The notes under the pieces are model-generated. The model was not told the DNA's origin. It searched no databases and worked only from the letters and a program-made list of their open reading frames with translations. The position numbers were made by a program, and so were the translations under genes. From sequence record ON529852.1: a stretch of DNA of 64,000 nucleotides; one strand, given 5' to 3'. This document shows positions 1 through 57,568 of the stretch, in pieces. The first letter of the stretch is position 1, and each line of letters starts with the position of its first letter.

Positions 1-55
1 GGAAGGGTCCCCGCAGGCTATCACGGTCGGGCCGGCGCCGCCATGGGCGCGCGGC

Positions 56-139
56 GTTAACCTTAATGGCGCGTTAACCATGCCTGTTAAGGTTAACGCG
101 GGGCCGGCCGCCGTTAACCCTCTGATCGTTAAGGTTAAC
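56..139. promoter_or_regulatory. Cluster of TTAA boxes including a CtrA-consensus site (TTAA-N7-TTAAC at 63-78)
   Basis: Eight TTAA tetramers (57,63,74,87,93,114,129,135) in GC-rich DNA; GTTAACCTTAA or its reverse complement occurs three times. Confidence 0.55.
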
Positions 140-371
140 GCCGCCGGTGGCTGGCGCGAGATCGTTGACAGGGGACTCAGTTGGTCTGTCGCACTTATGA
201 CACAGTCCGAGGGCGCCGTTGTCTGTCAACAAATCGCGTCTGGAATGCGCTTCCAGCGGAGCCCCGATTTTGAACCCTTCCCTATTCTTTCATGGATCAT
301 ATCCCAACATCCAAAGAAAAAGGCCGGTGCAGCGCACCGACCCCTTTCGAGTCAGATTGTGGAGAGGCTGA

Positions 372-3095
372 TCAGCCGAACGAGCCGATCTTGCGGGAGC
401 CGAAGCGGGTCCGGGAGCCCTTCATCCACTGGAGGGCCTGGGTCATGGCGTCCACCTGGTCGTCGTGGGCGCCTTCGGGGAACTGCCCGACTTCCTTGGT
501 GAAGGCGTCCATCCATTCGGCCTTCTTGGGCAGGAAGACGTCGCCGGCCGTGATCAGCGGACTGACCTCGTCGAAGCGGAATTCCTTGGACTGGCCCTTG
601 GGGTCGATGCCCACGATGGGGGCCGGCGCCAGGCGGCGGTGGCTGGTGGTCTGCCCCCGGTTCTGGATGTAGGCGGTGCCCTGGCCCTTGTCTTCGACCA
701 GGATCACATCGACGCCGTCCTTGACCGCCTGCTGTTCGATCATCTCGATCATGGCGTCGAACTCGACCTTCTTGCGGGTCTGGCGCAGCAGGTAATACTG
801 CCGGTCGTTGGTCTCGCCCCAGGTCTGCACGACCGTGTAGTCGGCCCGCTGATTGACCTTGGCGGCGCAGTCGACCGACAGGACGATGCGGCGGAAGTGG
901 GCGCGCTTGTTCGGGATCGCCTTGCCGTGCTCGTCGACATGGCCCTCGGCGCGCTGCTTCTTCAGCGCCTCCTCGGTCAGGTGCGGGGGCCGCTCGTAAT
1001 ACTGGAAGCGGCCGGCGATCGAGTCGTCGGAGGTCGCGGTGGCGTTCTGCTGGTAGACCAGGGCGAAACGCTGGTAGGACCATTCGGTCTTCTTCGTCTT
1101 GAAGAAGGACAGATCGTAGTAGTCCCACAGGACGTCGCCCAGCTTGCGGCCGAGCACGTCGGTGTCCTCGTCGATGCACAGCGCCGGCGCCTCGACCTGG
1201 GTCCACTGGGCGTAGGCCGGCAGGCGCGGGTTCATCTCCATCAGGTGGCCCGTCAGGTCGTGCTCGTGGAAGCGCGTCATGATCAGGAACATCTTGCCGA
1301 AGGGCAGCATCCGCGAACCGATGTCGCCGACGAACCAGGTGTTGACCTTCTCGCGGGCGGCGGCCGATTCCGCCTCCTCGATCTTGGCGTAGGGGTCATC
1401 GACGCAGGCGAAGTTGGCGCGGAAACCGTGGACGGCCTGCCCGGTGCCCTTGGCGACATACTGTCCGCCGTAGCCGGCGATGGCCCACTGGTCGGCGGCG
1501 CGGGTGGCGTAGTCGACCACCACCTCGGGGAAGACCCGACGGAACTCCTGACCGCCGACCAGAGAGCGAATCTTCTTGGAGAACTCGTTCTCGACGAAGC
1601 GCTGGCTGTGGCCGCCGCCGATGATCTTCAGCTTGGGATTGCGGCCCAGACGCCAGGCGACGAACAGGCGCGAGGCGTAGGTCGAGTTGTGCACCACGAC
1701 GCCGTCGGCGGTGAAGGTGTGGTCGCCGAACACGGTCAGGCAGCGGCACTCGCCGGAGCCGGCCGCCTCGACCATCAGCACCTTGTCCGTCACCTTCGAG
1801 CCGTAGGGCAGACGCTTGGCGACGAAGTCCGGTTCGTGGCGGCCGTGGAAGCTGATGCCGGAATCGAGCAGGCGTTCGATCGCCGGCCCCTTGACGATCA
1901 GGGCGGCGCGGCGGTTCGGCTGCGGGTGATCGACCACGGCGTCGACATCGTAGCGGGCCAGCAGCTTTTGCAGGTCCTGGGCGAAGCCGACCGACTTGAT
2001 CCAGGCGATCAGCGTGGCCTGGCTATACTTCTTCGGGGTCTCGCCGCGCAGGCGGAAGTAGGTCGTCAGGAAGTGCTTGATCTTCTCGTCGTCGCCCCGG
2101 AACACGAACTCGGGCACGCGGCGTTCGCCGGCGCGCTTGGTCATACCGAGTAGTTCCTGGTAGGGCCGGGTCGTCTTCGAGCGCAGCCGGATCAGGTGGC
2201 GCTTGTTCGCCGGGACCCAGCGGCGGGCGTAGCGGATGCCCAGAGCGTCCAGCACGCCTTCAGCCTCCTCGACATGGGCCAGGGAGGAGAACCACATCTG
2301 GAGGTTCTGGTAGGGCGTGCCGTTCGGCGCCGTCGCGTCGGTGAAGGAGCCGAAGGCGGCGACGAAGGCCGCCAGCGCGAAGACATCCTTGGTATGGCCG
2401 GAGGTGTCCTCGGGTTTTTCCGGGGTATGGCTGGTCATACCGACCACGCTCAGGTTCATGCGCGGGCGCAGGTTCTGGGCTTCGATCCAGTCGCCGTCGA
2501 CCAGGAAGGGGTGGTCCGGGGCCGACAGGATCGTGCGACCCTTTTCGGTCGTGATCTTCAGCAGCGGCAGTTCGCCCTGGACGTGAACCGCCTCGACCTT
2601 GCGGCGGCGGCCGGCGTGGGTGACGACCTCCTCGCCGACTTCGATGTCGCCCAGGGCCTTGTAGGCGCCCGACCCCATCAGGACCGGGGTGGAGACGTGC
2701 AGCGGCTTGGCGTGGCCGGGCGGGCAGTTGAGGATGAAGCGATCCAGTTCGGGATCGTTCTCGATCTTCTGGAGCAGTTCGGTCAGGTAGATGTGCCACT
2801 TCGATTCCGGCGGCTCATCGGGCGAGACGTATTCGCAGAAGGCGTTGAAGTCGTCGCGGGCCAGCGGCAGCAGCCGCTCCAGGTGACGCTTTTGCAGTTC
2901 GTCGCTCAGTCCCATCAGGGCGTCGATCTGCTGGTTGGTCTCGTGCACCCCGGTGATCTTGATGATCCCCTGGCGGGTGTTGTCGGGCAGGATCAGGCCG
3001 CGTTCCGCCGAGCGCTTGGCTTCGGCCGCGAGGCTCTGGAGTTGGTTGACGGCCTGGCGCGCTTTGATGCGGTCGGCGATGATGTAGTCGGACAT
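372..3095 (-). CDS. terL: Terminase large subunit, intein-containing
   Basis: Walker A CPPGHAK/S, Walker B-like ACVDDP, C-terminal nuclease motifs SVDCA and HDDQVDA; start placed at MSDYII (3095) just after the upstream gene stop. Confidence 0.95.
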   Translation of the reverse strand: MSDYIIADRIKARQAVNQLQSLAAEAKRSAERGLILPDNTRQGIIKITGVHETNQQIDALMGLSDELQKRHLERLLPLARDDFNAFCEYVSPDEPPESKWHIYLTELLQKIENDPELDRFILNCPPGHAKPLHVSTPVLMGSGAYKALGDIEVGEEVVTHAGRRRKVEAVHVQGELPLLKITTEKGRTILSAPDHPFLVDGDWIEAQNLRPRMNLSVVGMTSHTPEKPEDTSGHTKDVFALAAFVAAFGSFTDATAPNGTPYQNLQMWFSSLAHVEEAEGVLDALGIRYARRWVPANKRHLIRLRSKTTRPYQELLGMTKRAGERRVPEFVFRGDDEKIKHFLTTYFRLRGETPKKYSQATLIAWIKSVGFAQDLQKLLARYDVDAVVDHPQPNRRAALIVKGPAIERLLDSGISFHGRHEPDFVAKRLPYGSKVTDKVLMVEAAGSGECRCLTVFGDHTFTADGVVVHNSTYASRLFVAWRLGRNPKLKIIGGGHSQRFVENEFSKKIRSLVGGQEFRRVFPEVVVDYATRAADQWAIAGYGGQYVAKGTGQAVHGFRANFACVDDPYAKIEEAESAAAREKVNTWFVGDIGSRMLPFGKMFLIMTRFHEHDLTGHLMEMNPRLPAYAQWTQVEAPALCIDEDTDVLGRKLGDVLWDYYDLSFFKTKKTEWSYQRFALVYQQNATATSDDSIAGRFQYYERPPHLTEEALKKQRAEGHVDEHGKAIPNKRAHFRRIVLSVDCAAKVNQRADYTVVQTWGETNDRQYYLLRQTRKKVEFDAMIEMIEQQAVKDGVDVILVEDKGQGTAYIQNRGQTTSHRRLAPAPIVGIDPKGQSKEFRFDEVSPLITAGDVFLPKKAEWMDAFTKEVGQFPEGAHDDQVDAMTQALQWMKGSRTRFGSRKIGSFG
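1686..2705 (-). other. 340-aa intein in the TerL P-loop with a degenerate LAGLIDADG region
   Basis: Inserted between GHAK and STYAS; starts PLHVSTPV, block B SAPDHPF, block F ECRCLTV, ends VVHN followed by Ser+1. Confidence 0.92.
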
Positions 3096-3099
3096 GCTG

Positions 3100-3336
3100 T
3101 CAGTGGGTCTCGTGAGTGTCGAGCGCAACGGCCGCCAGCAGGTCGTCGACATGGTAGATGAGGTCCGCATCGCCGAGATGGCGCGTCAGGTGACGAATGG
3201 TGCGGAGGGTGTTTTCAAGCCGCAGGATGCGGCGGCGAAGGCGCGAGGCGCGGAGCATCAGCCCCGCCACCCCGATCAGGTAGACCGCGCTCATCGTGAG
3301 CATGGCCCACAGGAAGATCGGCGGCAGTTCAGGCAT
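3100..3336 (-). CDS. Small membrane protein
   Basis: N-terminal hydrophobic helix; coupled to terS by overlapping stop/start. Confidence 0.6.
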   Translation of the reverse strand: MPELPPIFLWAMLTMSAVYLIGVAGLMLRASRLRRRILRLENTLRTIRHLTRHLGDADLIYHVDDLLAAVALDTHETH

Positions 3337-4025
3337 CAGGAGAAGTCCGGCTCATCGAAGGCTTCGAGCGGCTCCAGGGCGTCCAGCTTGCCCATCACGT
3401 CGGCGGCGCGCGCGTCGTCCATCAGGGCGACGTCGGTCTCCGATCCGGTCGTCAGCTTGCGGTCCTTGGGATCGATCCGCTCCTTCTTGACGTGGCCCTG
3501 GATCAACTCCATCGCCGTGTCGTGGCCGAACTCACGGCTCAGTTCCGCCTCGGACTTCTCCGACTGCGGCAGGGCGCCGATGGCGTCGCCCAGAACCGCG
3601 TCCAGCTTGTCCAGGTCGAAGGATTGCGGCACGCTCGACCCGGTGTCGTCGCCCTGGCCGCCCGAGAACATGCCCAGGTCCTTGCCGATCAGTTCCAGGG
3701 CCGCGTTCGATTCCTTGAACTGCCCGTCGGCGGCGGCGTTCTGCGCGTTCTCGGCCAGCTTCTGGATGACGAAGGCGCGGCTGACGCCGGTCATCTGTCC
3801 GACCACCTTGGCGGCCTCGACGGCGGCGAGCCGCTGGGCCTCGCGCTGGGCCTTCTGGTCCTCGTAAAGTTCTTCGATCCGGGCGATGACGTCCGGGTCG
3901 GTCTCCAGGTGCTGGGTGGAGGAGCCCGGCGCGTAACCGGCCGCCATGGCGGCCTTGGCGGCGTTCATTCCCTTGGCGCGGTGGCGCGCGTAGAGTTCGT
4001 TGCGTTCGTTGGCGAGTCTTGCCAC
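3336..4025 (-). CDS. terS: Terminase small subunit
   Basis: N-terminal TerS-type HTH (ELYARHRAKGMNAAKAAMAAGY), FVIQKL..NA oligomerisation segment, position upstream of terL. Confidence 0.75.
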   Translation of the reverse strand: MARLANERNELYARHRAKGMNAAKAAMAAGYAPGSSTQHLETDPDVIARIEELYEDQKAQREAQRLAAVEAAKVVGQMTGVSRAFVIQKLAENAQNAAADGQFKESNAALELIGKDLGMFSGGQGDDTGSSVPQSFDLDKLDAVLGDAIGALPQSEKSEAELSREFGHDTAMELIQGHVKKERIDPKDRKLTTGSETDVALMDDARAADVMGKLDALEPLEAFDEPDFS

Positions 4026-4034
4026 TGTGGTTTA

Positions 4035-4286
4035 CTACTTCGAAAGGTCAGCCAGCATTCGGGTCAGCTTGCCAATACGGATGTTGATGTCGAGGAAGGC
4101 TTCGTAATAGAAGGTCGCCTTGTCGCGGTTCTCTTCGATCACTTCATCGGTCACGTCCTGGAACACCAGGGACACGACCGAAGACTGGAATGAGGTGAAG
4201 GCGTCGGCCGTCAGTTCAGCCCGATCCTGAAGCGCCTTGATCTCCTTGCGGAGCCGCTGGCGTTCGGAGCGGACCGCGTCAGGCAT
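4035..4286 (-). CDS. Hypothetical protein
   Basis: Packed in operon; start MPDAVRSE overlaps upstream stop. Confidence 0.55.
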   Translation of the reverse strand: MPDAVRSERQRLRKEIKALQDRAELTADAFTSFQSSVVSLVFQDVTDEVIEENRDKATFYYEAFLDINIRIGKLTRMLADLSK

Positions 4287-4773
4287 CGGCCCCGACCTCG
4301 ACTTCGCCGGCGTCGATAAAATCGACATCGACGTTGACGCGGATGCCCTGGGCGCCCAGGGCCGAGAGCACCTCGGACAGGTTGACGGTCGAACCGTCCT
4401 CATCGTCGTCGTCATCGGCCTCGGGCGGGACGTGGTCGACGCCGGCGCCGATGTCGGAGATCGACAGCATGTCCTCGGGGATGATCGCCTCGACCTCCTC
4501 GGGCTCCTGGTTCTCCCACATCTTATGGAAGCCCATCGCCACCTTGATCGGGATGCGCACGCGCACCAGCATCATGCCGCGATGGTCGAGCACGCCGACC
4601 GGGGTGATGATCGGTTCACGCGGATCGTCCACCAGGTGGTCGGCGGTCCAGGAGATCGAGCCGTCGTCGGACGGGATCGGTCCGGCCGTCTGGCGCTCGG
4701 CCAGGTAGCGCCGCAGCGGCTTGCCCGAGAACTCACGCAGGGCGGCGCGGATGGAGGTGGTGTAATCGGTCAC
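4279..4773 (-). CDS. Hypothetical acidic protein
   Basis: GTG start overlapping the resolvase stop; phage-like codon bias. Confidence 0.55.
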   Translation of the reverse strand: MTDYTTSIRAALREFSGKPLRRYLAERQTAGPIPSDDGSISWTADHLVDDPREPIITPVGVLDHRGMMLVRVRIPIKVAMGFHKMWENQEPEEVEAIIPEDMLSISDIGAGVDHVPPEADDDDDEDGSTVNLSEVLSALGAQGIRVNVDVDFIDAGEVEVGADA

Positions 4774-5282
4774 AGGCTCGGGAACTCTGCCAGGGTGAGG
4801 GGTTGCGGCGGCGCGGTCCGGAGAACTTGCAGCACGGCGTAGAAGGCGATCATCGCCGCTTCGGCCCGGCCGTCGTCCTTGACGCGGGCGAACAGATCGT
4901 AGGCGCAGGGAAAGACCTGCATGGCGCGGCGGCGCGCTTCGTTCTTGTCCTTGGGCGTCTTGGTGAGCGTCTTCCACTCCTGCGGACGCACCTTGGTCAG
5001 CATCGCCCGGCTGGCGGACGCGCCTTCCAGGATGCCGAGGTTGCGGCCGAAGTTGAACGCCGAGACGACGCCCATCTGCGGGCTGGACCAGACGTCTTCG
5101 ATGTAGACGTGATCGGGCGCGGTCGCGTCGAACAGGCGCGCGACGCCGGCCGGAGACACCGCCTCCTTGCCGCCCTTGCCCGGCTCCTTGGGCATGTCGG
5201 TGATGGCGACGGTCCAGACCTCGGTGTCGATCAGGGCCAAGGCCCCGTTCTTGCCGGGGTCAATTCCGATAATGCGGCTCAT
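4770..5282 (-). CDS. ruvC: RuvC-like Holliday junction resolvase
   Basis: IIGIDPGKNGA, YIEDV, SAFNFG and DGRAEA motifs. Confidence 0.85.
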   Translation of the reverse strand: MSRIIGIDPGKNGALALIDTEVWTVAITDMPKEPGKGGKEAVSPAGVARLFDATAPDHVYIEDVWSSPQMGVVSAFNFGRNLGILEGASASRAMLTKVRPQEWKTLTKTPKDKNEARRRAMQVFPCAYDLFARVKDDGRAEAAMIAFYAVLQVLRTAPPQPLTLAEFPSL

Positions 5283-5632
5283 GCGTCGTTCAGCAGTTCA
5301 GGGTGGGCGGCCGCCATGCGGTCGGCGGCGCGGCGGATGATCTCCATCGCGTTGGAGTCGTCGGCGGCCTGGGCGGCGAAGGGCGGCGCGTCGCGCAGAT
5401 GCGGCCCCAGGGCGAAATCGCCGCGTCGGACCTGGCTTTGCTTGATCATCTGCCAGGCGAGGTCTTCCGCGTAGCGGTGGATGGTCTCGTGGAAGACCGT
5501 CAGGTCGTCCTGGCGCAGGCTCGACAGATCGACGCCGTCGGGCATCTCGACCGCCACGGTGAAGCCGCGATCATGCGTGGCGATGGTGTAGTGGCTGCCG
5601 GGCGTCGAGCAGGGCGTCTTCAGGCGGCTCAC
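5279..5632 (-). CDS. Hypothetical protein
   Basis: GTG start overlapping upstream stop; operon packing. Confidence 0.5.
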   Translation of the reverse strand: MSRLKTPCSTPGSHYTIATHDRGFTVAVEMPDGVDLSSLRQDDLTVFHETIHRYAEDLAWQMIKQSQVRRGDFALGPHLRDAPPFAAQAADDSNAMEIIRRAADRMAAAHPELLNDA

Positions 5633-5759
5633 AGGCTTTCCGCCTTTTCTTCGAGCGCCGCCAGCGCGGCTTCCAGGGCGGCGATCTCGACGCGGTTCAT
5701 GTGATGCTCCGCCAAGGCCTGTCGCCAGATGCGCAGCACGCGGATGGCGTTGGCGGGGG

Positions 5760-5978
5760 TCATGAGGGGCGGAATCCCTGCTCGGCGAACTTGCGCTCGA
5801 CAATGGCGTGCAGGTTCGCCGCCACGGCGCGACTGCGTGCATCAGCGAGGTTCAGCAGGTCGTAGGCGGTGCGCAGCGCAAACGCGGCGTCAACCACGAC
5901 AGCGACCTGCGCCGGGGTCAGGGTGGCGTCGGCCGCCATGGCGTCGACCCGAACCATGAGACGGTCAAAGGCGGTCAA
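5760..5978 (-). CDS. Hypothetical protein
   Basis: 4-nt overlaps on both sides. Confidence 0.5.
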   Translation of the reverse strand: MTAFDRLMVRVDAMAADATLTPAQVAVVVDAAFALRTAYDLLNLADARSRAVAANLHAIVERKFAEQGFRPS

Positions 5979-6199
5979 GCGAAATCCTGCCCGAAACGCA
6001 ACGACAGTCGATCGCTCTCGGCGTTGTCGTCCTGGCGCTGCTGCATGCGCAGGAACGACGCCTCGAAGGCGAGGCGCTGCATCTCGGCCAGATAGTCGCG
6101 CAGCACCTGGGCGTCAGGCGAACCGGCGGCCTCCAGCGTCTCGACGTGTTGTTCGATCAGGGTCCGGCCGGCGGAACGGATGGCGGCGCTGTCGGTCAC
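5975..6199 (-). CDS. Hypothetical protein
   Basis: 4-nt overlaps on both sides. Confidence 0.5.
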   Translation of the reverse strand: MTDSAAIRSAGRTLIEQHVETLEAAGSPDAQVLRDYLAEMQRLAFEASFLRMQQRQDDNAESDRLSLRFGQDFA

Positions 6200-6357
6200 C
6201 AGGCGCTCTCCTCGGCGCGGACCTTGTGCGCGATTTCGGCGTAGTCGTCCGTGGGGTCGTAGTCGGAATCGAACTCATCGAAGGCGCGGTGCAGGACGCG
6301 TTGCGGCGGCGGGGTCTGCGGGGCCGGCGCGCGGCGGTTAACCTTAACGTCGGTCAC
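6196..6357 (-). CDS. 53-aa hypothetical protein (absent from ORF track)
   Basis: GTG start and TGA stop each overlap neighbours (GTGA); SD-like AAGGGA; contains GTTAAGGTTAAC. Confidence 0.5.
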   Translation of the reverse strand: MTDVKVNRRAPAPQTPPPQRVLHRAFDEFDSDYDPTDDYAEIAHKVRAEESAW

Positions 6358-6959
6358 GCGGCGGTTCCCTTGCGGTCGGGCAGGGTCGAGACGCCGTGTT
6401 CGTCAGTGGTGATGTTGGAGACGACGCGTTCGGCCAGCACGCGGCGCGGTTCGCCCGCCTTGACCAGGCCCTCGAAGCCCTGCACCAGGGCCGAGGCGTA
6501 GCAGTTGTCCACCGCCACGATGGTGCCCGAGCGCAGCTTGTCGTTGTGATCCGCCCAGACGATCTGCTGGTTCGATTTCCCAGGGAAACGGAAGCCGGTG
6601 CGCATGGCCCATTCGGAGGTCTCGATCCGCAGCGAGAAGGCGAGGCTCTCGGTGACGTCGCGCAGCAGCAGGGCCAGGCCCATGTCGGCGGGCCAGGAGA
6701 ACTCGTTCTTCAGAACGACCGCCATCCGAAACCCGTCCGCGCCGGCGGCGCGCAGGGCGGTGGTGACCGCCTTGGCGACTTCGGCGTCATCCAGCGCAGG
6801 GATGCGCGGCTTCAGCCAGGCCTGGAAACCGTCGAGGTGGCGATCGACCGCGCGAGCGATGACGCGATCGGAAAGAGGATCGGGACGGCCGTCGCCCTGG
6901 GGCGGCGTGCGCAAGAAACCGTGAGCCATGAGGCGGAGAACTCGGCAGACCCCGGACAT
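6354..6959 (-). CDS. Hypothetical protein, first gene of the packaging operon
   Basis: TTGACA -35 near 7003-7008 upstream; start uncertain (6959 or 6929). Confidence 0.6.
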   Translation of the reverse strand: MSGVCRVLRLMAHGFLRTPPQGDGRPDPLSDRVIARAVDRHLDGFQAWLKPRIPALDDAEVAKAVTTALRAAGADGFRMAVVLKNEFSWPADMGLALLLRDVTESLAFSLRIETSEWAMRTGFRFPGKSNQQIVWADHNDKLRSGTIVAVDNCYASALVQGFEGLVKAGEPRRVLAERVVSNITTDEHGVSTLPDRKGTAA

Positions 6960-7200
6960 GAGGTCTGTTACGAGGCCGATTTCTTACATAAAATCCGCCA
7001 TCTGTCAAGATTTACGGCAGACGGAGTCAGCCTTACTGACAATCGAGGGCGGCCGCAAGCCTTTTCCGCCAGGGCCGCCCAACGATCGGCGAGACCACCG
7101 CGAAGGCGGCGGAAGAGGGTGGGAAAGGCGGCGGGGAGGTAATTCTGAATTGTTGGTCTCAAGAGAGCAATTACCCTACCTCCTTACCCCCCATACTGCG

Positions 7201-7557
7201 AGTTTGGGATATTTATTAGTAGTAAATAAGAGAGGGTGTATCGGCCGCTTTCTGGGTCTCCTATTATCTCCTAAATCGTATCCCAAAATGGTAATAGAGA
7301 GTATAGGGGGTTCGCCCTGCTCCTGTAAGAGGCTCTCCTAATATCTCCTAAATCGTATCCCATAATGACAATAGAGAGTATAGGGGCACCGGCACGCCCT
7401 GTGCGGCTATCCTATCTTCTCCTAAACAATATCCCATAAATGCGGTGGTGTGGTATAGGGGCGCGCCTTCTCACCCTTTCGCCTATTTACGCCTAAGTTA
7501 TATCCCAACATTCGAGGGTCGTGCTGTCTCCTATTTCTTCTTGGATTTTATCCCATA
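7201..7557. repeat. AT-rich cluster of degenerate ~75-bp units carrying CCTA-N5-TATCCCA and GTATAGGGG (iteron-like)
   Basis: TATCCCA at 7279, 7356, 7430, 7501, 7549 and inverted at 7205-7211; GTATAGGGG at 7301, 7378, 7453. Confidence 0.8.
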
Positions 7558-7583
7558 AAAGCCTCCTCTCTGCATGGGGCAGC

Positions 7584-7612
7584 AAAAAGCCCCAGGCGGT
7601 GAACCTGGGGCT
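7584..7612 (-). terminator. Intrinsic terminator
   Basis: AGCCCCAGG/CCTGGGGCT stem followed by a U-tract on the minus strand, after gene 7639-8859. Confidence 0.85.
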
Positions 7613-7638
7613 CTGGGCCTGACCACCGCGTGGGCGGT

Positions 7639-8859
7639 CTACACCATGCGCGCTTCTCGGTAGGCTTCGATCTCCGACATGCGCATCGCGTCGGGCGTCT
7701 CCCGGTTCGGCCGCAACTTCTCACCACGGAAATCGAGCATCAGGACGCCCCGGCTCGCCATCACCGGGTCAATCCCCAGTTCGCGCGCCAGTGTCTCATA
7801 GAAGCTGACCGGCGCCCAGCAGTGGATGTTGATGCCGCAGCCGATCTCCGGGCTCTCGAACCGGTCCAGCAGGTCCAGCAGCAACGACAGGCCTTCTCGG
7901 CTGTTTCGGCGGTCCTCCCGGAAGTCCGCCACCTGGTCGGCCGTCGCGCCCTGCTCCAGCATGGCGTCGACCTTGGCCTGGGTCTCGCCGGCGAACCAGT
8001 CGTGGGTCTCGCGCTTGATCGCCTTGTGCTGCATCAGGGCGTAGAGGGCGGCGGCGATCTTCGGCTTGCGCACGAAGTCCTCGCGCTTGATCCCCATGGA
8101 GCGCCGCGCGGCGTTGTAGACCGACCCCACCTGGACGAAGAAGTCGTCGCGCGCCGCCGCCTGCTTCTTCTCGCTGCCGCCCAGTTCGGCGATGGTCATC
8201 TTGACCATCAGCCCGCCGAAATAGCCCCGCAGGGTCATCTGGTTCAGTTCGTCCTGGGGCAGGTTGTAGAGGCCGATGCGCAGCAGGTCCTGACGGATCA
8301 CCTCGCTCTCGCGCAGCAGCTTCTTGATCTGGGCGTAGCCGGTGGTGTCGCGCGGGTCGTAGGCGGTGCGCAGCGCATTATCCTCGGCGGTGTCGGTGCC
8401 GTAGCGCCGCCGCGTCGCCTGCTTGCGCACCTGGGTGAAGTCCTCGCCGGCCGGGCGCAGGCCGTGGTCGTCCATGATCTCGGCGAAGGTGGCGAAACCA
8501 CCGCGCTTGCGGATCGAGTCCAGGATCGACTGCTCGATCTGATCCGACGCGCCCAGGCCCTTCCGCTTGAACCCCCCGGCGACGGTAAAGGTCCCGCGCA
8601 GGCCCTCGACCCGGTGCAGGACATTGCTGGACGCCATGTTGCTCAGGGTCTTCGCCAGCAGGTCGCGCCCCCGGCGGTCTTCCCATTCCGGCCCCAGCGC
8701 CGGCAGCAAGTCGGCGGCCGAACCACCGCCTTCCATCGTCATGAGCGCGTCGACGATCGCGCGCTTGAACGCGTTCTGGGAGACGGGGATGCCGTGGATG
8801 GTCTTGTCCAGCGTCGGGTTGCTGGCGCGGGGCTTGATCTGGTCGTCGGTGTCGGTCAT
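7639..8859 (-). CDS. 406-aa protein with two predicted N-terminal winged-helix domains
   Basis: AIVDALMTMEGGGSAADLL..TLSNMASSNVLHRV..GTFTV and ILDSIRKRGGFATFAEIM patterns; own promoter and terminator. Confidence 0.7.
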   Translation of the reverse strand: MTDTDDQIKPRASNPTLDKTIHGIPVSQNAFKRAIVDALMTMEGGGSAADLLPALGPEWEDRRGRDLLAKTLSNMASSNVLHRVEGLRGTFTVAGGFKRKGLGASDQIEQSILDSIRKRGGFATFAEIMDDHGLRPAGEDFTQVRKQATRRRYGTDTAEDNALRTAYDPRDTTGYAQIKKLLRESEVIRQDLLRIGLYNLPQDELNQMTLRGYFGGLMVKMTIAELGGSEKKQAAARDDFFVQVGSVYNAARRSMGIKREDFVRKPKIAAALYALMQHKAIKRETHDWFAGETQAKVDAMLEQGATADQVADFREDRRNSREGLSLLLDLLDRFESPEIGCGINIHCWAPVSFYETLARELGIDPVMASRGVLMLDFRGEKLRPNRETPDAMRMSEIEAYREARMV

Positions 8860-8882: not shown

Positions 8883-8911
8883 ATGTTAAGCTTACTGACA
8901 CTTTCTGTCAA
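8883..8911 (-). promoter_or_regulatory. Sigma70-type promoter
   Basis: TTGACA-17-TAACAT; a TATCCCAAC box lies 4 bp upstream of the -35. Confidence 0.75.
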
Positions 8912-9000
8912 GAATGTTGGGATATAAAATAACAGGAAATAGGAACCACCGCCCGCAGGTCTTTGAAAAGGCTCGACAAGACCACCGCCCGAAACGACAT

Positions 9001-9078: not shown

Positions 9079-9350
9079 CTGAATCGGTCGTGTCGGTCGA
9101 AACGGTCAAGGGTTGGTAGGGCTGAATCGGTTGTGTCGGTCAAGACGGTCAAGGGTTGGTAGGGCTGGATCGGTCAAGGGTTGGCAGGGCTGGATCGGTC
9201 AGGGGTTGGCACGGCTGGATCGGGCATAAGCGATCAAGGACGGGCATGGCTGGATCGGTCAAGGCCTGGCACTCGAACGTGTTCGAGCCGGCTGGATCGG
9301 ACATCCTCGTTCAAGGCCTGGCACTCGAACGTGGTCGAGCCGGTTGGATC
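9079..9350 (+). repeat. Degenerate tandem array of CTG(G/A)ATCGG...TCAAGG units
   Basis: About 8 units of roughly 25-52 bp with pairwise duplications. Confidence 0.85.
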
Positions 9351-9501: not shown

Positions 9502-9825
9502 GAAGCGAGCGATGACATTAGGATTTGTCACCGTGCCCTTACAATCTGTCTCTGTCATTTTTCACGGCGGTGGTTGACAGCACCACCGGCAGTCCGTAGA
9601 CAACCTGGGCCGGGAGCGTTCTGCTCAGTCCGTGACCGGCTCTGGAAGAGAAGAGCGGCCGGCGCCTCCCGTACAGAGGATGCTGGTCGCTCCGATCTCA
9701 CCCCTGGCAGGCTCGGACTTTCCTGAACTTTCCTGAAAACTATCCCAACATTCCGAAGGGTCCCGCAGGACCACCGCCGTGTTGCATGTGGGACCACCGT
9801 CCGCATCGCTGCGCCAGGGCGGCTT

Positions 9826-9876: not shown

Positions 9877-9977
9877 TCTCCTGGTTCCGACAAGGCCTGG
9901 CACGGCTGAAGCGCAGCATCGGCTGCAACGTCAACACGGTGGTCCGTCAAGGCCCGGCACGGCCGTGTATTGCTTAG

Positions 9978-10057
9978 ACTTCCCTGAAATCTATCCCAAC
10001 AAATCGCAACACCCGAGCCGGTCAAACCGATTTTCAACCGACTCGGGCTCACGCCGG
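9978..10057 (+). repeat. Direct repeat block A (partner at 10980-11059)
   Basis: ACTTCCCT..TATCCCAA plus a 30-bp identical segment CGATTTTCAACCGACTCGGGCTCACGCCGG. Confidence 0.85.
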
Positions 10058-10059
10058 AC

Positions 10060-10896
10060 CTATCCTGCCTTGGCGCGGGCGATCAGCCGCGAGATGTCCG
10101 CCGGCCCCTGCCCCAGGTGCTCGCCCAGGGCGTCCCGGAAGGCTTCGCGCCAGGAGCGGTTTCGGCGGTATCCGGGGATCGCGTAGAAGGTGCGGATCGC
10201 CGTCATGATCGTATGCTCGTCGGCGTCCTCGGGCAGCCCGTAGACGATCTCGCTGATGATGGCGGGGCTCGGCGCGATGATGATCTCGGGATCGGCGCCC
10301 GGCGCGACGTAGCGGTGGTGGATGGTGGTGAACTCGCGGTGGTTCGGATGGATCGCGATACGATCGGTCGCCTGCCCGGCCTCGGTGCGTCGCCGGATCA
10401 CCTCGGCCAGCATCAGCCCGACCTCGTCCTGGGTGAAGCGGGATTCGCTGCCGCTGGCGCCGTGGTGGTGATGCGGCGTCAGGGGTTTGAAGTGGACGAC
10501 CTCGTCGTCCTCGTCGAGCCAGTCCACGCCGAGCAGGTCCGCGCCGGTCGAGCCGGCCCCGCGCACGGTGGTGTGCTGATAGACCGGCCGCAGCCGCAGT
10601 TCCGCCCGGACGCTGACGACGTCTGACAGGTCGAAGCGCCGGAACATCGGGTACTTGCCGCCGGCGTGGTCCTGCTTCTCCATGCGGTCGGCGGTGCGCA
10701 CGATGGCCTCGCCGATATAGCGGGCCATCTGGGCGGTGCCCAACGGCAGGCTGATCCGGGCGCCGTGGTCGATCTCCAGCGTATGGAGGGTGGCGTCGGG
10801 ATCGTAGCCGGGGCGCTTTTCGAGGATGCGCACGGTCATGCTGGCGCCGTGCGTGCCGGAGAAGTGCATCTCCTCCAGGGTCGTGGTCTTCTTCAT
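10060..10896 (-). CDS. Hypothetical protein
   Basis: Promoter TTGACA-17-CATGGT upstream; SD-like GAGA; flanked by direct repeats. Confidence 0.7.
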   Translation of the reverse strand: MKKTTTLEEMHFSGTHGASMTVRILEKRPGYDPDATLHTLEIDHGARISLPLGTAQMARYIGEAIVRTADRMEKQDHAGGKYPMFRRFDLSDVVSVRAELRLRPVYQHTTVRGAGSTGADLLGVDWLDEDDEVVHFKPLTPHHHHGASGSESRFTQDEVGLMLAEVIRRRTEAGQATDRIAIHPNHREFTTIHHRYVAPGADPEIIIAPSPAIISEIVYGLPEDADEHTIMTAIRTFYAIPGYRRNRSWREAFRDALGEHLGQGPADISRLIARAKAG

Positions 10897-10979
10897 GGTG
10901 GTCTCTCATCACAGGCTCTAGGCCCGAGCCGACCATGATGGGCGCCGCCGTTGCTGTCAATCCGCGACAGGTTTCCTGA

Positions 10980-11059
10980 ACTTCCCTAAGCCGTATCCCA
11001 AACCGCAGGAATGGCCGGCGCATCCAAATCGATTTTCAACCGACTCGGGCTCACGCCGG
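10980..11059 (+). repeat. Direct repeat block B
   Basis: Both sub-motifs offset exactly 1002 bp from block A. Confidence 0.85.
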
Positions 11060-11071
11060 CCTTGTCTCGGG

Positions 11072-11374
11072 TTAAGCCTCGGGCGCTGCCGAGCCTTCGG
11101 GGATCGTCGAGCCGCCGTTCAGGACCGCGTCGAACTGGTCGATCAGGTCCCAGATCGGCTTCATCTCGCCGTCGATCTCGACCTCGTCCAGGTTCCAGTC
11201 CGAGGCGATGCGGGCAAGCTGCCGGGCGACGCGGACCGCTTCGAGCGCGTCGAGCAGACGCTGGTAGTCGTGATCGTCCAGGATCAGGTCCTGGTCGTCG
11301 GGGCGGACGCCGATCAGGCGGGTGCGGATGAAGCCGGCGAGGATGTCGGCCTGGGTCGGGGGTGCTGAGGTCAT
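11072..11374 (-). CDS. Hypothetical protein, probably leaderless
   Basis: TTGACC-17-CATAGA then 6 nt to ATG; real start MTSAPP rather than the ORF-track extension. Confidence 0.65.
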   Translation of the reverse strand: MTSAPPTQADILAGFIRTRLIGVRPDDQDLILDDHDYQRLLDALEAVRVARQLARIASDWNLDEVEIDGEMKPIWDLIDQFDAVLNGGSTIPEGSAAPEA

Positions 11375-11645
11375 TGACACTCTATGTTGGGTATCTTGAC
11401 CGGGGTCAAGGGGATCGCCGCCCGCCCCGATGCATCGGGGCGGGCGCGCAACCTGGTCAACCAGCAAACCCAGGCGGGCGCACCACAGGGGCGCCTCGAT
11501 CTCGCGCTCACCGAAGAGCGCCACGGCCGCCGCAGCTAGGAACGGGACTGCGCGGACGGACCTGGACATTGCCGTCGATCCTGACAAAGGTCAAGCGAAA
11601 TGTCCGTATGTCCACAGGCGCGTGGGCGCGGTGGTCCGGGCAAGC

Positions 11646-11781
11646 AAAAACCCGCCGGCGAGGGACCGGCGGGTTCTCAGGAGCGCTTCTGTTCAGGGAA
11701 GCCGTGCTCGTGAAGAGCACCACGATCGCCTATGCCGGGTATGGGTGTCTGAAACAGGAGTCGCTGCCCGGCGCGACCGGA
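11646..11781 (-). ncRNA. Candidate sRNA F (~135 nt)
   Basis: TTGACA-16-CATTGT promoter (11787-11814), three hairpins, terminator with U-tract, no ATG-initiated ORF. Confidence 0.6.
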
Positions 11782-11828
11782 CCTCGACAATGCCATACTG
11801 GCAGTGTGTGTCAATGGGGACGACATAG

Positions 11829-11941
11829 AAAAAGACCCGCCGGCGAACCGACGGGTCTGGATCGATCAAGATGCTGGGACCTGTTAAAGGTCCACTTGCT
11901 CGGAAGCCGAAGCCCCGGACGACACAGGATACGCGTGCCTT
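11829..11941 (-). ncRNA. Candidate sRNA G (~115 nt)
   Basis: TTGACA-17-CATAGA promoter (11948-11976), hairpins, UUCG terminator with G-U pair and U-tract. Confidence 0.6.
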
Positions 11942-12017
11942 GATCCCTCTATGGGCGAACCCGGAAGGTGTGTCAAGAATCCAGGCGCCGAGATTCCTCC
12001 CGAGGGCGGGCGCCGCG

Positions 12018-57040: not shown

Positions 57041-57317
57041 CGAGTCTTCAAGGCTGAATCCGGACCGGACCTGAAGGTGCCGGGTCTCGTGATGATCCGG
57101 TCTGATTTTCCTGGTGTTTCCTGCGCCTTATCCCAACAATTTGTTAAGACCTCCGACGGCGCCTCCAGGCGGACTCGCTGCGCTGTTGTCGGGCGAGGCT
57201 TCCCTGCCGCCGGGGGATGGCGGAGCCTCGCGGCCGGAGCGTAATCGGGGGGCGTCATGCGCTCGCACAGGGAAGTGTCCTGCCAAGGACAAGGCTTTGT
57301 GGCACACTTGGGGCGAA

Positions 57318-57568
57318 ACGAAAAGCCCCGCCGGAGAACCGACGGGGCTTATCCACAAGGGAAGGTCCTAAGACCTCGCTCGGTGCCTCTTGCCTTACGG
57401 CTATCCCGCACAACGCGTGGACCCCTTACAGGGCGGGTGGACGCTTTTGCTCCGAAGAGCGCAACCGATCTATCGTCCGAAACAGGGTGAGACCTCGGCG
57501 GCCGCACGAGGTCTCGGGCGTTCTCAAGCCGGCGTTCCGATCCTCGTACTGACCGGCGATTGAACAGC
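57318..57568 (-). ncRNA. Candidate multi-branch RNA C (~250 nt)
   Basis: TTGACT-17-CATACT promoter (57573-57601); two GUAA and one UUCG tetraloop; terminator with U-tract. Confidence 0.65.

Follow-up and report, generated by a model that had tools for sequence, protein, structure and literature searches.

What purpose is served by the AT-rich array of repeated boxes that, in the genome of Brevundimonas phage vB_BpoS-Kabachok, separates the terminator of the gene at 7639-8859 from the twelve genes of an operon running from 6929 to 372? Kabachok is a giant phiCbK-like siphophage infecting B. pondensis (PMC10070969); it belongs to the Dolichocephalovirinae as a relative of phiCbK and carries 566 genes on 356,285 bp. 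The window, i.e., the whole 64,000-nucleotide stretch of DNA analyzed here, comprises bases 1-64000 of record ON529852.1, and window coordinates equal record coordinates, given that 6000-9500 matches the same bases of the record with 100% identity; genome-wide scans took in the complete record of 356,285 bp. All genes around the array are located on the minus strand. An initial annotation of the window had proposed that the boxes are the target of one phage DNA-binding protein and that the array is a candidate origin or packaging/terminal-repeat signal.

A tripartite element at twelve intergenic sites

Alignment of all copies defined the repeated element as a 33-bp sequence of three parts, TTYCCTR-N3-TTYCCTR-N5-TATCCCAAMA, with two TTYCCTR boxes 10 bp apart and TATCCCAAMA located 12 bp beyond the second. 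The two-part TATCCCA box described earlier is real, with 12 occurrences in the window versus 0.8 expected, and is now extended by a third box. TATCCCA on its own was observed 12 times in the window versus 2.4 expected, a count of at least 12 being reached in 0 of 100 shuffles. A 36-nt weight matrix built on the 12 sites and run over the 356,285 bp scored them at 37-53 bits (leave-one-out 29-49 bits); besides these, no site in the entire genome exceeded 12 bits, leaving no weaker tail.

The TATCCCA cores are found at 300, 7279, 7356, 7430, 7501, 7549, 9741, 9992, 10994, and 57129 on the plus strand and at 7211 and 8924 on the minus strand (Table 1). All 12 copies are intergenic, none being contained in an annotated gene. 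Ten of them run antisense to the surrounding genes; the two gene-sense copies are positioned upstream of gene starts, one directly against a -35 element. Eleven copies are concentrated at 0.3-11 kb, the remaining one is at 57 kb, and the other 300 kb are devoid of them. With just 12 clustered sites in 356 kb, the motif is thus not reused genome-wide: the full-genome motif scan delivered 12 strong sites, and no general reuse. The outlying copies named in the initial annotation (300, 8924 on the minus strand, 9741, 9992, 10994, and 57129) were all confirmed, and the variant box reported at 11387-11403 was discarded on account of a weight-matrix score below 12 bits.

Table 1. Positions of the motif copies and of neighbouring features in the window.
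Feature	Position	Strand	Description
Outlying copy	277..309	+	66 nt beyond terL stop, directly after terL terminator
Twelve-gene operon downstream of array	372..6929	-	RNaseH-like resolvase, TerS (3336-4025), TerL
TerL with intein	372..3095 (also given as 372-3170)	-	Intein_splicing and Hint matches, residues 160-495
Conserved block CAATTACCCTACCTCCTTACCCCCCATACTGCGAG	7163..7201	.	All but two or three positions kept in four phages
Inverted copy	7202..7234	-	43.5 bits; TATCCCA 7211->7205; tail-to-tail with first direct copy, 21 bp between
Array copy 1, GTCTCCTATTATCTCCTAAATCGTATCCCAAAA	7256..7288	+	52.8 bits
Module B, ATAGAGAGTATAGGG	7294..7308	+	Exact repeat 7371-7385; degenerate repeat ~7447-7461
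Array copy 2	7333..7365	+	50.4 bits
Array copy 3	7407..7439	+	48.8 bits
Array copy 4	7478..7510	+	47.1 bits
Array copy 5	7526..7558	+	46.7 bits; terminator of upstream gene 25-30 nt away
Intrinsic terminator of 406-aa gene	7575..7611	-	12-bp GC stem, then CUUUUUGC U tract
406-aa protein, PHROG 10876	7639..8859	-	Homologue of phiCbK gp311 and Colossus gp440; candidate motif binder
Promoter of 406-aa gene	8883..8911	-	Sigma-70-type, TTGACA-17-TAACAT; kept in Papperlapapp, Bambus, L034
Copy at promoter of 406-aa gene	8915..8947	- (gene sense)	43.5 bits; ends 6 nt before -35
Outlying copy, canonical form TTTCCTGAACTTTCCTGAAAACTATCCCAACA	9718..9750	+	48.3 bits
Outlying copy	9969..10001	+	Directly beyond terminator hairpin of gene 10060-10896
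Outlying copy	10971..11003	+	Directly beyond hairpin ending gene 11072-11569; without counterpart in Papperlapapp or Bambus
Distant copy	57106..57138	+	In 557-bp non-coding gap; kept in Papperlapapp and Bambus

The array and its AT-rich island

The six TATCCCA boxes previously counted in 7201-7557 were all recovered, five on the plus strand and one (7205-7211) on the minus strand. From start to start, the direct copies are spaced by 77, 74, 71, and 48 bp. The word GTATAGGGG, likewise reported for the units, is present at 7301, 7378, and 7453. The region 7201-7401 is the sole 200-bp window below 45% GC in the genome and the lowest-GC one of the 356 kb, and the longest low-GC tract of the genome extends over 7076-7626. 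The GC skew of Kabachok tracks the direction of the genes and offers no indication of an origin.

Next to the array, the conserved block CAATTACCCTACCTCCTTACCCCCCATACTGCGAG is recognizable in the metagenomic relative L034 and in Gurke as a TTACCCTAC core. An anti-Shine-Dalgarno mimic, ACCTCCTTA at ~7176-7184, was considered and rejected, not being kept in L034. Small ORFs in 6968-7162 were rejected as well; indels between relatives shift the frame, making a coding function unlikely. A conserved sigma-70-like TTGACA element at ~7008 probably serves the twelve-gene operon as part of a promoter at ~7008-6975. The intein of TerL is likewise annotated in phiCbK and Colossus.

Several copies directly follow terminator-type hairpins. 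Those with cores at 300, 7549, 9992, and 10994 are located 5-30 nt beyond strong gene-sense hairpins, followed by U tracts at 300 and 7549; a counterpart of the terminator of the 406-aa gene is annotated in CcrColossus. Two further non-coding stretches of the region were recorded. Two minus-strand units in 11570-12017 look like small RNA genes; both combine a TTGACA-type promoter with a strong intrinsic terminator (at 11833-11858 and ~11640-11680). A further iteron-like array is found at 9079-9350, within the 1.2 kb of non-coding DNA that precede the 406-aa gene; it is made up of GC-rich tandem units of ~25 bp (GGTCAAGGnTTGGCAGGGCTGGATC) together with longer variants.

Comparison of the motif with known sites

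A search for the strict motif in 185,579 species genomes yielded none in Brevundimonas, Caulobacter or Caulobacterales and 13 single matches in unrelated taxa, mostly Bacteroidota and Firmicutes; in IMG/VR, it was not found. The CtrA box (TTAA-N7-TTAAC) was rejected, as the motif lacks TTAA half-sites and the island contains no such box. Genuine CtrA-type arrays downstream of terL have been published for phiCbK-group phages (PMC9437464), and CtrA-type boxes are abundant elsewhere in Kabachok, namely at window 55-140 and at the record end. From the DnaA box (TTATCCACA; Caulobacter G-box TGATCCACA), TATCCCAAMA differs by an extra C. Neither perfect nor G-type DnaA boxes occur in the island, and the entire genome holds two perfect ones; a perfect box TTATCCACA at 57349-57357, 215 bp from the copy at 57129, may be a chance occurrence. 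No IHF site is present in the island, and the sole Rfam match in the window is a tRNA.

Promoter classes were compared in the same manner. The sigma-54 consensus (TGGCAC-N5-TTGC) has a similar spacing on the minus strand and fails at the missing -12 GC, and a sigma-32-like reading (CTTACA-N15-CCCCTATAC) fits a single unit. A T7-like reading of module B was dropped as no polymerase gene was found: no T7-type RNA polymerase was identified among the large ORFs scanned, three of which are unassigned, and a six-frame search with PF00940 gave no match, though the search control gave none either. Sigma-70 region 2 was not detected. A general promoter class was rejected because 10 of 12 sites are antisense and 11 of 12 lie within 11 kb, with none in the other 300 kb.

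Conservation in related phages

Three relatives with 83-90% DNA identity, Papperlapapp, Domovoi, and Bambus, retain the array along with its TATCCCA cores and module B (AATAGAGAGTATAGGGG) while the flanks diverge; their upstream boxes are altered, with TCTCCTA changed to TCATTAA. Copies are likewise retained in these three phages downstream of terL, within the gap at 8.9-10 kb, at the distant position, and upstream of the 406-aa gene. The metagenomic relative L034, whose protein is 62% identical and whose flanks are unalignable, has an array of at least five direct copies and one inverted copy with an assembly gap inside, and further copies at the promoter against TTGACA and in a 1.3-kb gap upstream of the gene. 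In four phages in total, a copy stops 6 nt short of the TTGACA -35.

On a wider scale, the order of 406-aa gene, terminator, and AT-rich repeat island is common to six lineages (Kabachok, L034, Gurke, CcrColossus, phiCbK, and L036). In every lineage, the GC content of the island is 19-34 points under the locus mean, and in phiCbK, Colossus, L034, and L036, i.e., all lineages where the minimum was computed, the lowest-GC 200-bp window of the locus is the island region. The repeat words differ in the islands of Gurke, CcrColossus, phiCbK, and L036. The downstream neighbour gene of the island is a different one in L036, indicating that the island goes with the 406-aa gene. The equivalent island of phiCbK is located at 199.6-200.3 kb. 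It contains the 15-mer ATAGAGAGTATAGGG once and exactly (JX100813 199,740-199,754), on the same side relative to the genes as the two exact occurrences in Kabachok; with up to two mismatches allowed, this 15-mer is absent outside the islands across both genomes.

A further word, GACCACCGC(C), appears in non-coding gaps of Kabachok (7090, 7620, 8940, 8980, 9769, and 9790) and Gurke (L006 1340-1700), the surrounding sequence being unalignable between the two. The Gurke record ON529850 opens within a tandem island repeat, and the N-gap of L034 (5610-5690) lies inside the array. Islands thus break assemblies, and published copy numbers may be too low.

The winged-helix protein encoded beside the array

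The 406-aa protein belongs to PHROG 10876, a family of unknown function, and its homologues are confined to Caulobacter and Brevundimonas phages and related metagenomic contigs. A Pfam search and a PDB sequence search gave no match, including none to a known Rep family with two winged-helix domains, e.g., Pfam Rep_3. In the AlphaFold model (mean pLDDT 81), residues 24-102 form a winged helix with matches of the IclR, MarR, and histone H1 type (Z 8-9, rmsd ~2 A over ~67 residues). Residues T71 and N74 of its recognition helix (helix 3) are invariant in nine of nine aligned homologues. A possible second winged helix at residues 96-204 is hinted at (Z 7.6). Beyond the N-terminal winged helix, fold and sequence searches returned nothing specific, and the remainder is helical.

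The packaging region and the genome end

The terminal repeat begins in terL codon 652 in phiCbK and ~95 bp after the terL stop in CcrColossus, and in both phages it runs away from the island (PMC3556154). Downstream of terL, the block order of Kabachok equals that of the first 1.9 kb of Colossus beside the mapped left terminus. Shared blocks are a GGGGACCCT array, GAGTCAC words, arrays of short GACG-containing direct repeats (in Kabachok CGTCAAATCG, in Colossus of the GACGCGATTCCATT type), and CtrA-type boxes. Colossus furthermore has a motif-like element, TAGCCTA-TTTC-TACCCTA-ATTTCGAAGGGTCCCC, 27 bp from the left terminus, the positional equivalent of which is the Kabachok copy at 277-309. 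Based on this common end architecture, the Kabachok end is expected near window 255-265, and the repeat would extend from it in the direction of the record end. The array is ~7 kb away from this predicted end; of all copies, that at 277-309 alone is close to it. By the analogy to Colossus, the earlier suggestion of the array as a packaging/terminal-repeat signal is not supported. Low-depth Logan contigs with Kabachok DNA (virome and wastewater libraries) displayed no starts, ends or coverage step.

Two repeat-rich blocks were recorded in this context. Window 1-371 and ON529852 354,470-356,285 (L008 48185-50000) together form a stretch of ~2.2 kb that follows terL and is almost devoid of genes, holding CtrA-type boxes, 11 CGTCAAATCG, GAGTCACG words, and 7-10 GGGTCCCC at 24-50 bp. 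A second such block at ON529852 336,500-338,300 (L008 30230-32000) comprises CtrA-type boxes, GCGTCAAATCGAAA units, and GAGTCACG words, with six GGGTCCCC repeats of 24-bp period inside CDS 337382-338389. Given its distance of ~18 kb from the first, it may be near the other terminal-repeat boundary or represent a duplication.

Discussion

The motif set is read most economically as the target of a phage-specific DNA-binding protein. The proposal of one such protein is strengthened by the 12 specific intergenic sites, their conserved positions, the absence of the motif from the host clade, and the adjacent winged-helix gene; binding itself is the part that we infer. The neighbouring winged-helix protein stands out as the best candidate for the binder, judged by its synteny with the island, the copy at its own promoter, and the absence of the motif from the host clade.

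Several known systems share traits with the locus. As in iteron origins (Rep-iteron systems of pPS10, F, and R6K, P1 oriR, lambda ori-O protein, and SPP1 oriL-G38P), direct repeats lie in or beside the most AT-rich DNA, an initiator-like DNA-binding gene adjoins, an extra copy is located at the promoter of that gene, and the candidate binder has a winged-helix domain. An unwinding region is represented by the lowest-GC 200 bp of the genome, and tandem repetition by five direct copies and one inverted copy. However, iterons are 17-22 bp long and recur every two helical turns, whereas the Kabachok sites are tripartite, 33 bp long, and arranged in units 71-77 bp apart, about seven helical turns. 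Moreover, the island lacks perfect or G-type DnaA boxes, the protein matches neither Rep_3 nor another family, and further copies are spread across 11 kb, with one at 57 kb. The head-to-tail boxes of ~7 bp with a period of 10-12 bp recall response-regulator sites (pho box, CtrA box) and suggest head-to-tail oligomers of the winged-helix protein; the sequence of the motif, in contrast, differs from those boxes and was not found in host-clade genomes. RTP-Ter of B. subtilis and Tus-Ter likewise feature ~30-bp bipartite sites for a winged-helix protein, a strong orientation bias, and several dispersed copies, but the 406-aa protein has no RTP or Tus homology, and five tandem copies on AT-rich DNA would be atypical. 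With terminase sites (lambda cosB R sites, SPP1 pacL/pacR), the locus shares repeated boxes and bent AT-rich DNA near terminase genes as well as one copy near the predicted end; unlike in these, the array is ~7 kb from that end and the phiCbK island lies outside the mapped terminal repeat.

Taken together, we tentatively favor a reading in which the array offers iteron-like binding sites to the neighbouring winged-helix protein and serves as origin or control hub. The three ~7-bp boxes of the 33-bp element would all face one side of the helix and would be recognized by a single phage-specific, sequence-specific DNA-binding protein, most likely the winged-helix protein from 7639-8859, encoded directly upstream. 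On the six copies at 7202-7558, placed on the most easily melted DNA, a large nucleoprotein complex would assemble. The same protein would also occupy the copy that adjoins the -35 element in front of its gene, which would imply self-regulation. We infer that the winged-helix protein binds the motif and that the complex on the array starts replication: an initiator gene, AT-rich direct repeats, and an operator-like promoter copy follow the logic of iteron origins, and on this logic the array is read as a candidate origin or control hub. Speaking against this reading, the protein has no demonstrated Rep-like two-domain fold, ten copies oppose the genes and four of the five such copies outside the array directly follow terminator-type hairpins, a placement that an origin model does not need, and the copies at 57 kb and 0.3 kb are left unexplained by an origin. 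The repeat words of Gurke, Colossus, and phiCbK, moreover, differ despite a similar recognition helix. A broader version, which we regard as rather unlikely, would make winged-helix gene and island the origin/initiator module of all Dolichocephalovirinae including phiCbK, with long tripartite iterons varying by genus and, as a second function of the same protein, the oriented post-terminator copies acting as polar barriers that shield the packaging region from transcription or forks.

Alternatively, the element could act on transcription at unit boundaries, either as a polar roadblock or insulator aiding termination or by activating or repressing the winged-helix gene and the packaging operon. 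We consider this possible, though doubtful. The exclusively intergenic position, the four copies 5-30 nt beyond strong hairpins, and the two gene-sense copies upstream of gene starts, one of them against a -35, are all consistent with such a role, but six tandem copies far exceed the needs of a roadblock or operator, the probable operon promoter is ~200 bp beyond the array, and the lowest-GC location of the island in six lineages would have no explanation. A packaging signal for terminase (TerS) or a helper, marking the approach to the terminal-repeat junction or directing the terminal cut, appears quite unlikely. The copy at 277-309 matches the position of the Colossus element 27 bp from the mapped left terminus (PMC3556154), relative to the predicted junction, all copies are found on the side of terL, ten of them in one orientation, and the operon headed by the array encodes TerS and TerL. 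Yet, beside the distance of ~7 kb from array to predicted end, the phiCbK island lies outside the terminal repeat at a distance of 5.2 kb, its words are absent at the mapped boundaries, and richer repeat blocks (GGGTCCCC, CGTCAAATCG) occupy the predicted Kabachok end.

Improbable to a similar degree are tandem promoters, facing the plus direction with the boxes as -35 and TATCCCA as -10 and giving antisense or non-coding RNAs, or in gene sense with CCCCTATACT as -10, and feeding a replication primer or strong late transcription. The 16 nt from box 1 to TATCCC and a gene-sense CTTACA-18-TATACT scoring 9/12 would suit them, the TATAGGG(A)GA core of module B resembles T7-type promoter starts, and its 15-mer is common to phiCbK. 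However, neither sigma-70 region 2 nor a T7-type RNA polymerase was found, TATCCC has no -7 T of a -10 element, the plus-strand copies have no downstream genes and run into hairpins lacking U tracts, and 12 clustered sites are unlike a promoter class for a 566-gene genome. Finally, it is highly improbable that the copies merely reflect local duplication of a small repeated or mobile element devoid of its own function. Besides the box, copies 9992 and 10994 share a 42-nt hairpin module with 90% identity, suggestive of duplication, and the copy at 10994 has no counterpart in Papperlapapp or Bambus; against this, TATCCCA core and positions persist at 62% protein identity where flanks are unalignable, and the island is syntenic in six lineages.

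Neither the phiCbK genome paper nor full-text literature searches yielded a description of the island, and for the phiCbK group, no defined replication origin, packaging recognition site or phage-specific regulator site was found in the literature searched. The element is now separated from the CtrA-box arrays already described in phiCbK-group phages. What is gained is a set of sites that is precise and very clean, a candidate binder that can be named (a homologue of phiCbK gp311), and an equivalent island in phiCbK, a model phage in long use for which genetics and RNA-seq exist. Together, site set, candidate binder, and phiCbK island render the question directly testable, with the array as a good candidate for the replication start or control site of the phage.
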